A stretch of DNA of 64,000 bases from Octopus sinensis (lineage: Eukaryota). The notes under the pieces were generated by a model. It ran no database searches. It was not told the origin of the DNA and saw only the letters and a list, made by a program, of their open reading frames with translations. The stretch covers positions 12,710,001 to 12,774,000 of the forward strand of contig NC_043013.1 in the NCBI RefSeq assembly GCF_006345805.1, in the 5' to 3' direction. Positions 37,891 to 60,099 of the stretch are shown in pieces (position 1 is the first letter of the stretch; each line of letters begins with the position of its first letter). The position numbers and the translations under genes are program-made.

Positions 37891-37960
37891 TTGGGATTCT
37901 TCGTCACCATAACTGTCTTCTTCAGCCAATGATTCTAAATTCCTCTCAGAAGATAGTGAT
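37891..37960 (-). CDS. Candidate micro-exon B, unit 1 (70 nt, phase 2 to 0): (L)SLSSERNLESLAEEDSYGDEESQ
   Basis: Acceptor ttcattttttgtag|, donor |gtaatt, open frame, phase-complementary to exon A. Confidence 0.6.
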
Positions 37961-40193
37961 CTACAAAAAATGAACCAAGGAGGAAGTTTAAGATTAGTGA
38001 AAGTTGTTTGTCATATGGAGTGTAGTTAACATTCTGGACATTTGAACTTCATCTAAAAGTTGAGAAAAGGAGAAAAGTGATATTGTTGCATGGGTTGGGA
38101 GCAAGAAACAATGGAATATTATTGAAAGACTAATATAGGAGGTGATGAGAAGGATGACCAAGAGGGAGTTAAGGTCAGAATGAGTCAGAGGTTAGAGGTA
38201 TGGTCAGGGTCTGGTGAGCAAAGGCGGAGAGGAAAGCTAAGAACATATGAGGAGACGGTAGATAGATTCAGTGAGGATTATGAATAAATTTATGGAGTAA
38301 TATCTATGTATATTTAGACCTGTTGTGAAATTAGGAATACATTTCAATAAGTAGCTTTGAACAATTTTATTTCAAAAGAGAGGTCAGCAAATCTTGACGA
38401 AGTGCTCAGACAGTAAAACTCGTCAGTTTGATTTTTATTACAAGCTGCTGAAAATATACTTCATAGACTTCATTTCACATCAAAAGGTACATTTACGCAT
38501 AAAGTCTGGGGTGTAAATACTCATGTAATTAATATCAAGTCATCAAATTTCTACAATTTTCAAATGGCATTTAACTGGTACAATTTTGATTGTGTTTTGA
38601 TATATAGCCTTCTGCCATTTATCTCGGTTTTGTGGGATGTGTAGGTGTGTGAGATCTGATGAACTGTAAAAGACAGTTAATCTGCTTAATTAAATTCACA
38701 TCTCTAGAAAAACTTCTGTTTCAATGTATGATTTCTTACATAAAATAAGACCTCAAGTTTCAAGAATTACCATAAGGTATTTTGTTTGACCGTTTTATAA
38801 TTCTGCTAATCCACTACATTTTCTTCAAATGTATATTAAGACACAAACAAACAGTAACATTAGAAGAGATAAACTGATAGGTTAAACATTTCTGACTTGA
38901 CTGTATGTATTTGGTGGAGATACTTAGCGTTTATGGGGCAAATTTCAAAGCTACACTAAATACACGGTGGTAACACACTTTACATTGTTATTAGTTTGCA
39001 CGGATTTACTTGAGCATCGCTTTTGTTGGAACCAAAATGTTTTCGCTTTTCCCTTTATATCTACAGGAAACCCCTTTGTAGTTTCCGATTCAATGTTTCC
39101 TTTTCCTTACCGTTATAACGTCATTTCATTTCTTCAATACAAAAGGTTCTGACTAATGCTTAAGTAAGAATTAATATCATATATTTATAAATATCTGATA
39201 AATATTTTCGAGACAAAATAATAATTTCAAATGTCCAGAAAATTGATTTTTTTAGAACTGAAAATATATTATCAAATCTAGTTCAAAATGGTTAAAGTCG
39301 TCAACAGAAACTATGAAAGAGTGAAGTATAAAAGAAAAAACAGAAGCAAAGAAACAATCAAAGCCAGTGAAATTGCTGGATCTCTTGTAACTTTAAAACA
39401 AACATCACAACTACATGGTTACATTACATCAACAAAGGAAAATACTTTACTTCAAATAGAATATAAAATCCAATATCACCATAATACCTATACCATATAT
39501 ATATATATATATATATATATATATATATATATATATATATATATATATTGTTGTATTTCGGAATGGTCATTTTGACAGTTTAGCCGATAAAAACACATGC
39601 ACTATATATTTGGTGTTACTTTGCTACAGTGTTATTTATTTTTTACATTAATCTTAATCTTATTTCGGTCAGAGTTCTTTCGTCACACAAAAGTGACCGC
39701 ATCAGTGGTCCTTTGCTTTCTTCTTTCTTATTTGTGTGTCTCTCCTTACTAACCGTCAGCCATTTTGCTTTTCTATTGTATGTGTCTATGTGTATTCATT
39801 TGTGCATGCTTATATCTCTATGTGCGTCTATGTTTAATTAGTGTGTGTGTGTGAATGCCTGTAATATTTGTATCTTCTGTTTATATACGTTCGTGTAATT
39901 TGTTTTTGTTTTTGTTTATTCTTATTTTGCTCATGTATTTACATCCACTTATTATTATTTTCATTACGTATGCTTCTATGTATGTATGTATGTATAACAA
40001 CAATACTGCTACTACTAATGATAATAATGATAATAAAACATTTTAAAACATTTAAAAATTAAAAAAAAATCTTTTAAATTTAAGAAAAAATTATATAGTT
40101 ATTTATTTCTATTTGTTTATTTATCTGTGTATTTTATTTATTATGTTTTCGGCTTTGTTTATATTGTAACCAGTTTATGGGGATCCTCTACTG

Positions 40194-40496
40194 TCATATG
40201 TTGTGGTGTGTGCTAGTGTTCCATTCCAGTTTCCTATTCAGGGTATGTTTATCTTCTATTATGTGTGTAGCTTCCGTAATTTGACTCATTGTTGCATCTG
40301 TTCTATGCGTGGACAAGATTTTAACTTCTATGTTGTTGATTGATCCCCCGTGTTCATGCTCGGCATGTTGGTACAGAATTGATGAGCTTTTAGCGTCCTT
40401 AAGTTCTCTCCAATGTCTATTTACCCGCTCTTCTATGCTTCGTGCCGTTTCCCCTACGTATGTCGTTGTCTTGTTACTGCTCATCCCTCTATACAT
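40194..40496 (-). mobile_element. Penelope-like element GIY-YIG endonuclease fragment, unit 1
   Basis: TYVGETARSIEERVNRH...SSILYQHAEHEH...ITEATHI...LNRKLEW: YVGET.R...R..H motif with downstream E and N. Confidence 0.82.
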
Positions 40497-40652
40497 CTTA
40501 TACTATAGACTACTATTATCTTGGCTTGAATATTTTAAGTTTTATAATTATTAATTTTTATCAATATTAATTATTTACTATTATTCATTTTCATTTTAAT
40601 TAAATTTCATATTTTAACATTTTTGTATACTTTCTTATATTATTATCTTTTA

Positions 40653-40836
40653 GGCGGCGAACTGGCAGAATCGTTAGCGCGTCGCTTCGTTCGGAGTTCA
40701 AATTCCACCGAGTCGACTTTGCTTTTCATCCTTTTGAGGGTCGATAAATTAAGTACCAGTAAAAACACTGGAGTCGGTGTAACCGACTAGTCTCTTCCCC
40801 ACAAACTCGAGACCTTGTGCCTACAGTAGAAAGGAT
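40653..40836 (+). mobile_element. SINE family B, unit 1
   Basis: ggcggcgaactggcagaatcgttagc...gagttcaaattcc...ccttgtgcctacagtagaaagg, with ATT repeats on both flanks. Confidence 0.88.
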
Positions 40837-57886: not shown

Positions 57887-58188
57887 TCATATGTTGTGGT
57901 GTGTGCTATTGTTCCATTCCAGTTTCCTATTCAGGCTAGGTTTATCTTCTATTATGTGTGTAGCTTCCGTAATTTGTCAGATTGTTGTATCTGTTCTATG
58001 CGTGGACAAGATTTTAACTTCTATGTTGTTGATTGATCCCCGTGTTCATTATCGGCATGTTGGTACAGAATCGATGAGCTCTTAGCTTCCTTAAGTTCTC
58101 TCCAATGTCCATTTACCCGCTCTACTATGCTTCGTGCCGTTTCCCCTACGTATGTCGTTGTCTTGTTACTGCTCATCCCTCTATACAT
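57887..58188 (-). mobile_element. Penelope GIY-YIG fragment, unit 3 (frameshifted)
   Basis: Copy of unit 2. Confidence 0.78.
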
Positions 58189-58344
58189 CTTATACTATAG
58201 ACTACTTTTATCTTAGCTTGAATATTTTAAGTTTTATAATTATTAATTTTTATCAATATTAAGTATTTACTATTATTCATTTTCATTTTTATTAAATTTC
58301 ATATTTTAACATTTTTGTATACTTTCTTTTATTATTATCTTTTA

Positions 58345-58528
58345 GGCGGCGAACTGGCAGAATCGTTAGCGCGTCGCTTCGTTCGGAGTTCAAATTCCAC
58401 CGAGTCGATTTTGCTTTTCATCCTTTTGAGGGTCGATAAATTAAGTACCAGTAAAAACACTGGAGTCGGTGTAACCGACTAGTCTCTTCCCCACAAACTC
58501 GAGACCTTGTACCTACAGTAGAAAGGAT
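58345..58528 (+). mobile_element. SINE family B, unit 3
   Basis: Copy of unit 2. Confidence 0.88.
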
Positions 58529-60040
58529 TATTATCATCACCTTATTTTACTACTATTACTATTTTTCTTAAATATAAATATTAACACACACACAAATAAC
58601 AAAGCATATTTCATCTACTTTGTTGGAGTATCTCAACCGATCAGCATGTAACTTCCTTTCGGCTTTCGAAACCGCAACTCCAAATCACCATGCAATAACC
58701 TATCACTAGACCAAGGAAATTTTACCTCCGATCAGAAGTGGACTCTCAAGAAAATAAACAGACTGACTCGGTAAGAGAATCATACAACAGGAACGTTTCA
58801 TGACCATTCCCCACAGGCAAGACAACCAGGCAGAATGTTAAACTTGGTCTCCAGAAAGAATAAGAATAAGAATTATAACGAATCAAAAATTATATTCTTT
58901 CACAGAAAAGATTATAGATACACTGATTCCAAAGCAGTCCGTTACAGGCGAAAAACCCTCTACGCGACGGTAAAAGGAATCACATGCAAGATGAAAGAAA
59001 CTGTAACAAAATCCCTTTTGCTTACTCTCTTCTTTCTTTATTTGTTTCTCTCTTAACTCAGTATGATTGAACTTTTGGCGTTCCACATCTTTTATATACT
59101 TCGCCCATCATTTTCTGATATTATTGAATTTTGTGAACATTTAATCATTTAAACATATTGATCCACACTTTTTACATTCTTAACCTATCATTTATGATAC
59201 TATTGAATTTTGCGAACATTTAATCATTTAAATATGTTTTGTACTTCGCAAACAAAATAGGGCCTTGGGACCGAGGAGAGGAGGTAACGCTTAGAAAATA
59301 TCTTGAAGGATGGTGAACATAGCGACAGAAAATTTGCGACTGTTCAGCTACGGAACCAGTGTAAGAAGGGAAGAAAAAGGGGTACTGACAGTTGGTCACG
59401 CGACAGTAGCAGGCAGAGGAGAAAGACTGCAGGGTGAGAGAACGACAGAGAAAAATAGGGAAGGGATGAAGGGAAAGAAGAAAGGCTGGGAATACAAGAG
59501 AGAGAAGGGGTAAGTAGAAAGTCTATAATAAATAAATACACACACACACATATGTGTATATCTATATATATTAAGTATGTAAGTATGTTTTAAAAGTTGT
59601 GGGCTAATTACGGAGTGCTCTTAGAGAGCCTATGCGAAAAAATACAGAGTAGAAAAAATTCAAAACGCAAGTCTTAGGAAGTCAAACAGATTCCCGAACG
59701 CATAAATGAGAAATTTCAATCGAAGTAGTTGAATGATATATATTTATACACATCAACATAAATCATACATGTACAGGCGTGAAAATGCTCCAAGGTTATA
59801 AAGAATGAAATCAAACATACATAGAAATATAGAAGAAATATAAAAATTTATATAAAAATACTTATCAAATTACATATAAATAAATTTACATATAACGAGT
59901 TATGCGTGATAAATATAGGAGGTGCAAAATGGATGAGAGATTGGTACATTCTGTAAGGATCAGATATCGAGATATGTAGGTATTTAATGGGTCTTTCGAT
60001 ATGATGAAGAAAGTTTATCTGGAAATGTCTGTCTACTTAC

Positions 60041-60099
60041 AAATCATCAAAAGATGTCGATGTCAAAGGCAATTGAATTTGTGTTTCTGTTGTTTCAGG
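60041..60099 (-). CDS. Candidate micro-exon A, unit 3
   Basis: Identical to the unit 2 copy, including splice sites. Confidence 0.65.

Follow-up and report, generated by a model that had tools for sequence, protein, structure and literature searches.

Does a long tandem array in the genome of Octopus sinensis lengthen a protein, and if so, which one? The window analyzed here is a 64,000-nucleotide stretch of contig NC_043013.1 (assembly GCF_006345805.1, positions 12,710,001 to 12,774,000, forward strand) of AT-rich, microsatellite-laden eukaryotic DNA with one 100-N gap (34362-34461). Its right-hand part consists of units of about 8.84 kb (period about 8843 bp) repeated head to tail, as self-BLAST and three-way MAFFT alignment show; the array reaches the window end at 64000 and goes beyond it, so that the three copies seen are a minimum. 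An initial annotation had proposed that every unit carries, on the minus strand, a cassette of two micro-exons that together encode one 43-residue repeat, and that a host gene is lengthening this repeat by duplication. Our analysis indicates that it probably arose when one cassette out of an older array of exon pairs was recently amplified, and that this older array encodes an N-terminal extension of an octopus TRPM-like (SLOG/LSDAT) protein.

The two segments were found at exactly the positions given for them, with the proposed splice sites and phases: a 59-nt segment A (phase 0 to 2) and a 70-nt segment B (phase 2 to 0), each present in three copies (Table 1). Segment A is preceded by ...caattaacgttgtttttcttctattctctag, a strong polypyrimidine-AG acceptor with TTAAC upstream of it, and its donor side reads gtaagtagac; segment B is preceded by ...ttggttcattttttgtag (acceptor ttttttgtag) and followed by gtaattta. 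A and B sum to 129 nt, or 43 residues per unit, and the A-B-A-B-A-B chain is open in frame 0 only, over 129 codons, with both the A-to-B and the B-to-next-A joins in frame and the peptide as claimed. The predicted spliced junctions read ...GATGATTT/ATCACTATC... and ...GAATCCCAA/CCTGAAACA... (slashes mark exon boundaries here and below), and splice sites and frame are kept in all six exon copies. What does not stand is the word micro-exon, which usually denotes exons of up to 27 nt and at most 51 nt; both segments exceed the upper limit, while paralogues of 44, 46, and 49 nt, described below, would qualify.

The link to a protein family comes from an exhaustive HMMER (phmmer) search of 1.84 billion representative proteins with the 129-residue product as query; a word-indexed protein search with the same product returned no match. 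The best match (E = 1.5e-13, found by the exhaustive search only; BLASTP 2e-18) is CAI9735658.1 of Octopus vulgaris (hereafter P0001), a "TRPM SLOG domain-containing protein" with a Pfam LSDAT_euk match at 3e-70. Its N-terminus consists of four successive exon pairs, followed by the SLOG domain: MQIGRGGGRRPVAMASSANG/LELQEMAEVSGQKPKQ, PETTETLIQAPLASICFD/ISPSSESSAEEDEESQ, IGGEEKRKLLKHTRK/LELPEIAEVSGQKPKQ, and, in context, ...KPKQ/PETTETQIQPPVASTSFD/ISPSSERNLESSAEKDSYSDKEFQ/TSQKW.... Identity between the fourth pair and the 43-residue unit of the window is about 70%, and the BLASTP alignment is contiguous over both predicted junctions, so the protein search that the initial annotation had suggested as a check did return a homologue matched across both. 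P0001, whose gene spans 192 kb, is alone in joining the motif and the SLOG domain. A second O. vulgaris model, CAI9735616.1 (P0007), has 210 residues spread over 84.6 kb and no domain, and the two models include different sets of pairs. The O. vulgaris N-terminal extension is of low complexity and is acidic in its PETTET-type pairs. Other candidates from the search were rejected as relatives: P0002 is encoded by an intronless gene on a metagenome contig, beside clathrin-adaptor and HhH-GPD genes, and P0003-P0006 are long repeat proteins with weak matches (E 1.6e-05 to 7.9e-04, 26-41% identity).

We compared the window with L001, the 104.6 kb of O. vulgaris chromosome OX597830.1 around P0007. 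Window positions 34463-43399 (minus strand) are collinear with L001 from 63527 to 51198 (plus, the gene strand), with a mismatch divergence of 4.8%; all three window units align to one L001 copy, and the cassette is single-copy there. At the syntenic positions L001 has annotated coding-sequence (CDS) exons, PETTETLIQAPLASKCFDK- (56 nt, 52728-52783) and -SLSSESSAEEDEESQ (46 nt, 58725-58770), which are 3 nt and 24 nt shorter than A and B of the window. The P0007 CDS uses the acceptors, donors, and phases predicted here (...ttctctag before and gtaagtagac after the A-type exon; ...ttttttgtag before and gtaattta after the B-type exon). These annotated syntenic exons, together with the TRPM SLOG homologue and the frame-keeping paralogues below, support the proposal of two small coding exons and one 43-residue repeat per unit. 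The window may be either the orthologue of the L001/P0001 locus from a related species or a paralogue of it. A scan of 20000-37890 for a compatible phase-0 exon downstream of B copy 1 gave nothing convincing, which fits L001, whose next exon lies past the end of the stretch that matches the window; within the 104 kb of L001 we found no SLOG exon.

The O. vulgaris N-terminal array has a two-exon periodicity of 8-17 kb, and L001 holds further, older paralogues of both exon types with recognizably homologous intron flanks. Window 42261-43104, for example, is paralogous to L001 76980-77751, 16032-16598, and 94747-95517, with flanks about 74% identical. Exon A is a diverged paralogue of the "first coding exon" type (IGRGGGRRPVAMASSANG), which implies a common ancestral pair for the PETTET-type and the MASSANG-type pairs. 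The idea of a host gene lengthening its repeat by duplication is thereby retained as to the amplification and amended as to its origin: the cassette is not new at the locus, and the array is the latest round in an older array of diverged pairs.

Are the exons translated? The A-like exons (59, 56, 53, and 44 nt) are all 2 mod 3 in length and the B-like exons (70, 46, and 49 nt) all 1 mod 3; the paralogues have undergone at least five length changes, every one a multiple of 3, whereas of the 71 gaps in the alignment of the window to L001 (exon gaps counted in) only 18% are divisible by 3. Eight consecutive L001 exons join into a 132-codon frame, and the remaining frames carry 6 and 7 stops. In three comparisons with their ±250-nt flanks, A exons diverge by 12.5% versus 3.2% (p = 0.005), 15.1% versus 1.8% (p = 5e-5), and 6.8% versus 2.2% (p = 0.06); B-type exons show no rate difference. 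When three independent contrasts are pooled by the Nei-Gojobori method, nonsynonymous differences (Nd) number 27.5 and synonymous differences (Sd) 2.5, a ratio of proportions (pN/pS) of about 3.4 (binomial P = 0.016). Taken together, the frame, splice, and rate tests point to exons that are translated, and to a constraint on frame and splice signals under which residues would change freely or under positive selection, all on small numbers.

Several observations weigh against the reading of the array as translated cassettes of a TRPM-like gene. Scored with a simple acceptor/donor weight matrix, the two acceptors are among the best 8 and the best 12 of 467 minus-strand AGs, and the donors only in the top ~10%; one unit contains four cyclic in-frame exon pairs on the minus strand and six on the plus strand that score at least as well as A/B, and control chunks of the window contain 0-7 equally good in-frame pairs each. 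Splice-site scoring, another of the checks suggested at the outset, therefore fails to separate A/B from chance, and by these signals alone the pair is not above it; it is above chance because its relatives, through homology and synteny, give the evidence. Between units 1 and 2, 7 of 129 exon positions and 139 of 4660 intron positions differ, so the exons are no better conserved and give no signal of purifying selection, and the selection statistics above are based on about 30 substitutions. P0001 and P0007 are both singleton "hypothetical predicted" models without transcript-derived cluster members. The O. vulgaris gene models were built from Iso-Seq, RNA-seq, protein alignments, and ab initio predictions (PMC10700109), and these two may be partly ab initio; the P0007 model also looks chimeric, because its exons are drawn from several duplicated segments and include an implausible hydrophobic one at L001 42842-42997. 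The motif is annotated in O. vulgaris only, and our protein searches found it in no O. sinensis or O. bimaculoides protein; nor did the word-indexed and exhaustive searches, or the cluster members, contain a transcript-derived protein with it. A tblastn search with P0001 found no SLOG-coding exon in the window, so that the TRPM-like link rests on homology and on a synteny that ends at the assembly gap. Finally, the 99.9% identity between copies is compatible with an assembly artefact.

Part of this evidence would suit a different reading, in which the segments are untranslated, being either chance splice-like open reading frames (ORFs) or exons of a 5' untranslated region or long non-coding RNA that gene predictors have read through. 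It would account for the equally good pairs that arise by chance, for the purifying selection that is not seen, and for a motif that escapes the word-indexed search and is annotated in one species. We nevertheless hold it to be very unlikely, given that every length change preserves the frame against the 18% background, that a single frame stays open through the eight consecutive L001 exons, that nonsynonymous change is in excess, and that acceptors, donors, and the branch-point-like TTAAC are kept among paralogues whose flanks have fallen to about 74% identity. An ORF borne by a transposable element (TE) was rejected as a source of A/B: the copies occur only at paralogous exon positions, and the remnants of TEs are in other parts of the unit. 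The spliced product matches no Pfam TE family, Rfam and ARAGORN gave no matches over the array, and no diverged copies of A or B were detected elsewhere in the window by tblastn, blastn (word size 7), or nhmmer.

How the array arose can be read in part from the differences between its units. High identity begins sharply at 37544, with a weaker 85% stretch of the unit reaching back to 37119. Between units 2 and 3 identity is 99.9%, with 8 mismatches over 8.8 kb, most of them within microsatellites. Units 1 and 2 diverge by about 3% over 37544-42638 and not at all over 42639-46465; the left, diverged half of unit 1 represents an older copy. The switch near the (AT)n tract probably marks a breakpoint, either of the recent amplification or of a conversion tract; with one half of unit 1 diverged and the other identical to unit 2, the newest amplification would have its breakpoints near that tract. 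A (TC)n(TA)n(GT)n microsatellite holds the unit junction, and beside it is an element resembling a short interspersed element (SINE), which shares 85% identity with 37187-37476 and 82% with 20487-20587. The ancestral counterpart of the microsatellite is (TA)n(TG)n at 37119-37186, and the ancestral arrangement of (TA)n(TG)n plus SINE is present both at 37119-37476 and in L001. From this junction and the second switch near (AT)n we infer that a block of about 8.84 kb with one A/B pair was copied in tandem by unequal exchange at microsatellite and SINE sequences.

A degenerate mariner lies in the B-to-A intron, with identical copies near 52319-53245 and 61176-62102, and is absent at the syntenic place in L001; it would thus have inserted first, and the latest amplification would have followed. 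An intron mostly filled with TEs, as had been supposed, is not demonstrated: dispersed copies account for 17% of one unit when it is compared with about 220 kb of other sequence, and the recognizable content consists of the one mariner, one GIY-YIG-like fragment (probably a TE remnant; its unit-2 copy is at 49178-49348), the SINE-like element, and microsatellites. The coding share of each 8.8-kb unit is about 1.5% (129 of 8,843 nt).

The same comparison of units bears on whether the copies exist at all. The exons could be real and their number an artefact of assembly, by over-expansion or haplotype duplication, in a genome that has one or two cassettes. We think this unlikely, since half of unit 1 differs from unit 2 by 3%, including 7 exon substitutions, and at least two copies must therefore be real paralogues; microsatellite lengths also vary between units, as they would for separate loci, and the same locus family contains many older true duplications. 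The features that favor such an artefact are the mere 8 mismatches between units 2 and 3, the N gap some 3 kb from the array, where synteny is lost, and the one cassette copy in the O. vulgaris locus.

If the array is a genuine amplification and its exons are translated, what would it add to the protein? Each 43-residue unit has 10 Asp/Glu, 1 Arg, and 14 Ser/Thr, for a net charge of about -9, in agreement with the acidic, Ser/Thr-rich repeat described initially. About six CK2-type sites per cassette can be read by eye from the S/T-x-x-D/E consensus. AlphaFold2 gave the repeat product a mean predicted local distance difference test (pLDDT) score of 43.7, which fits disorder as weak evidence, and the repeat tail is probably disordered. 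TRPM N-termini are cytoplasmic, and phosphorylation is for that reason likelier here than glycosylation; the initial annotation had allowed either. If all copies are spliced in, each would lengthen, by 43 residues, a disordered tail that lies in the cytoplasm on the N-terminal side of the SLOG domain, so that genomic copy number would set protein length.

That last step supposes that every cassette is used. Intact cassettes might instead be skipped, alternative, mutually exclusive, or too young for selection to have acted, in which case protein length would not track copy number. The differing sets of pairs in P0001 and P0007 and the B-type donors, mediocre by the weight matrix, would fit such partial use, but all six exon copies retain splice sites and frame, and in the annotated proteins the older pairs follow one another in series; we regard it as doubtful. 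A more far-reaching proposal is that the exon pairs form a diversifying module of variable copy number, with positive selection (pN/pS > 1) on short exons between conserved flanks, gain and loss by unequal exchange, and individually variable, highly phosphorylatable acidic tails that tune channel or SLOG-domain function. The related TRPM-like locus L002 of O. vulgaris seems to reuse the same intron flanks with unrelated exon cores inside them. We consider this proposal distinctly unlikely, and the amplification of one cassette within an older exon-pair array remains the explanation we favor.

Table 1. Features of the tandem array and its vicinity, in window coordinates
Feature	Position	Strand	Basis or remark
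Tandem array, at least 3 units of ~8.84 kb	37119..64000	.	self-BLAST, three-way MAFFT
Unit 1 (3'-most in gene orientation)	37544..46465	-	alignment of units
Unit 2	46466..55308	-	self-BLAST, MAFFT
Unit 3, cut by window end	55309..64000	-	self-BLAST, MAFFT
Exon A copy 3, 59 nt, PETTETQIQLPLTSTSFDD-	60041..60099	-	homologue of L001 CDS exon 52728-52783
Exon A copy 2, same sequence as copy 3	51195..51253	-	sequence reading
Exon A copy 1, 4 substitutions (4/4 nonsynonymous), PETTETQIRSPLSSTFFDD-	42354..42412	-	unit alignment, substitution count
Exon B copy 3, 70 nt, -LSLSSERNLESLSEVDSYGDQESQ	55678..55747	-	homologue of L001 CDS exon 58725-58770
Exon B copy 2, same sequence as copy 3	46835..46904	-	sequence reading
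Exon B copy 1, 3 substitutions (3/3 nonsynonymous)	37891..37960	-	unit alignment, substitution count
Unit 1/2 divergence switch, ~3% to 0%	42639..42897	.	last mismatch 42638; (AT)n tract 42839-42897
Compound microsatellite of the unit junction, (TC)n(TA)n(GT)n	46038..46163	.	also 54875-55006, 63732-63870
SINE-like element, tRNA-like head (GGAGGCGCAATGGCCCAGTGGTTAGGG...), adjoins unit junction	46164..46472	+	similarity searches within window
Degenerate, frameshifted mariner transposase remnant, B-to-A intron	43480..44406	-	Pfam Transposase_1 9e-15, HTH_48 2e-12
GIY-YIG-like ORF fragment, A-to-B intron	40197..40502	-	E = 0.0017, 19.1 bits, below Pfam cut-off 22.6
100-N assembly gap; collinearity with O. 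vulgaris L001 stops there	34362..34461	.	alignment

Beyond the array, collinearity with L001 stops exactly at the 100-N gap; window 1-34361 has no counterpart in L001, though L001 runs 41 kb further. The window therefore lacks the gene's downstream exons: either the scaffold join is wrong, or the loci differ by a large structural change and the downstream part of the gene is missing here. L001 itself has a direct segmental duplication spaced by about 61 kb (16452-24572 versus 77605-85586) and an inverted duplication of exon pairs, with copies at 86764-86811, 94839-94892, and 96913-96960. L002 is the locus of another O. vulgaris TRPM-SLOG gene, P0009, 12 Mb off on the same chromosome. Upstream of and within that gene, at L002:466-700, 5600-5900, and 12760-13080, B-type intron flanks turn up again and enclose unrelated "exon" cores, which are 29, 52, and 76 nt long; a 1-mod-3 length and an open frame persist in two of these cores, the flanks being conserved and the cores hypervariable.

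The rest of the window is rich in repeats. A reverse-transcriptase fragment at 276-707 (minus strand; Pfam RVT_1, E = 1.6e-11), resembling a remnant of a long interspersed element, abuts an (AG)n tract. Tandem two-copy duplications of 185, 206, and 132 bp, 90-99% identical, occupy 14577-14944, 19165-19576, and 25836-26097, and the 185-bp and 132-bp duplications consist of SINE-like (tRNA-related) sequence. An Rfam tRNA match at 30703-30762 (minus strand) is barely at threshold. Very long degenerate tracts of (TGT)n, (GTG)n, (TGA)n, (GT)n of about 725 bp, and (ACT)n/(CAT)n at 7652-11385 and 23046-25541 account for the majority of the long, artefactual entries in the ORF list. On the strand opposite to the exons, a short acidic Ser-rich ORF at 35081-35293 (plus strand; …SDLYDVSDLIQNVNSEYESDSEKSVDDY…) has no Pfam match and may be the N-terminal remnant of a TE.

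If the copies are real and spliced in, the locus would offer a very young and cleanly readable case of protein lengthening by amplification of a whole cassette. The protein family adds to its interest, as in other animals the N-terminal regions of the TRPM-like SLOG family are important to gating and to the sensing of ligands. The analysis flags a lineage-specific N-terminal module of octopus TRPM-like proteins that appears to evolve fast and might vary in copy number between individuals. For genome annotation, it suggests that short unannotated exons in the huge introns of cephalopods are recoverable through repeat structure combined with comparison of paralogues. Local TRPM expansions in molluscs are known at the gene level (bioRxiv 10.1101/2024.05.23.594666), and we found no description of this N-terminal exon-pair array.

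Among the closest known systems is the O. vulgaris array behind P0001 and P0007, with a homologous motif, identical splice sites and phases, 9 kb of collinearity, and the same two-exon periodicity; in L001, however, the pair is single-copy, the exons are shorter, and the mariner is lacking, whereas three near-identical copies are present in the window. Nebulin and titin, with their super-repeats, and other repeat proteins with duplicated exons likewise extend a repeat by duplicating exons plus introns through unequal recombination with the frame kept. Unlike these, the copies in the window are very young (99.9% identity), the unit is long for the 129 of 8,843 nt that it devotes to coding, and the target is an unstructured tail and no structural repeat. 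Conotoxin genes, with fast-evolving exons and conserved introns, offer an analogy only: here the A-type exons outpace their ±250-nt flanks in rate of change by a factor of 3-8, and nearly all changes are nonsynonymous, but the sample here is very small and lacks the secreted-toxin context, and the conserved flanks of the octopus exons may simply reflect the splicing needs of short exons.

By analogy, the mechanism is one already known, tandem amplification of an exon cassette, and its closest analogue is KIV-2 of human LPA, where two exons per 5.5-kb unit encode a 114-residue folded kringle, copy number sets protein size, and polymorphism is documented. The window differs from it in that its unit encodes a 43-residue acidic, probably disordered segment, in three copies known from genome sequence alone. 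What the two have in common is a multi-kilobase, head-to-tail unit in which two exons of compatible phase make up one protein repeat.

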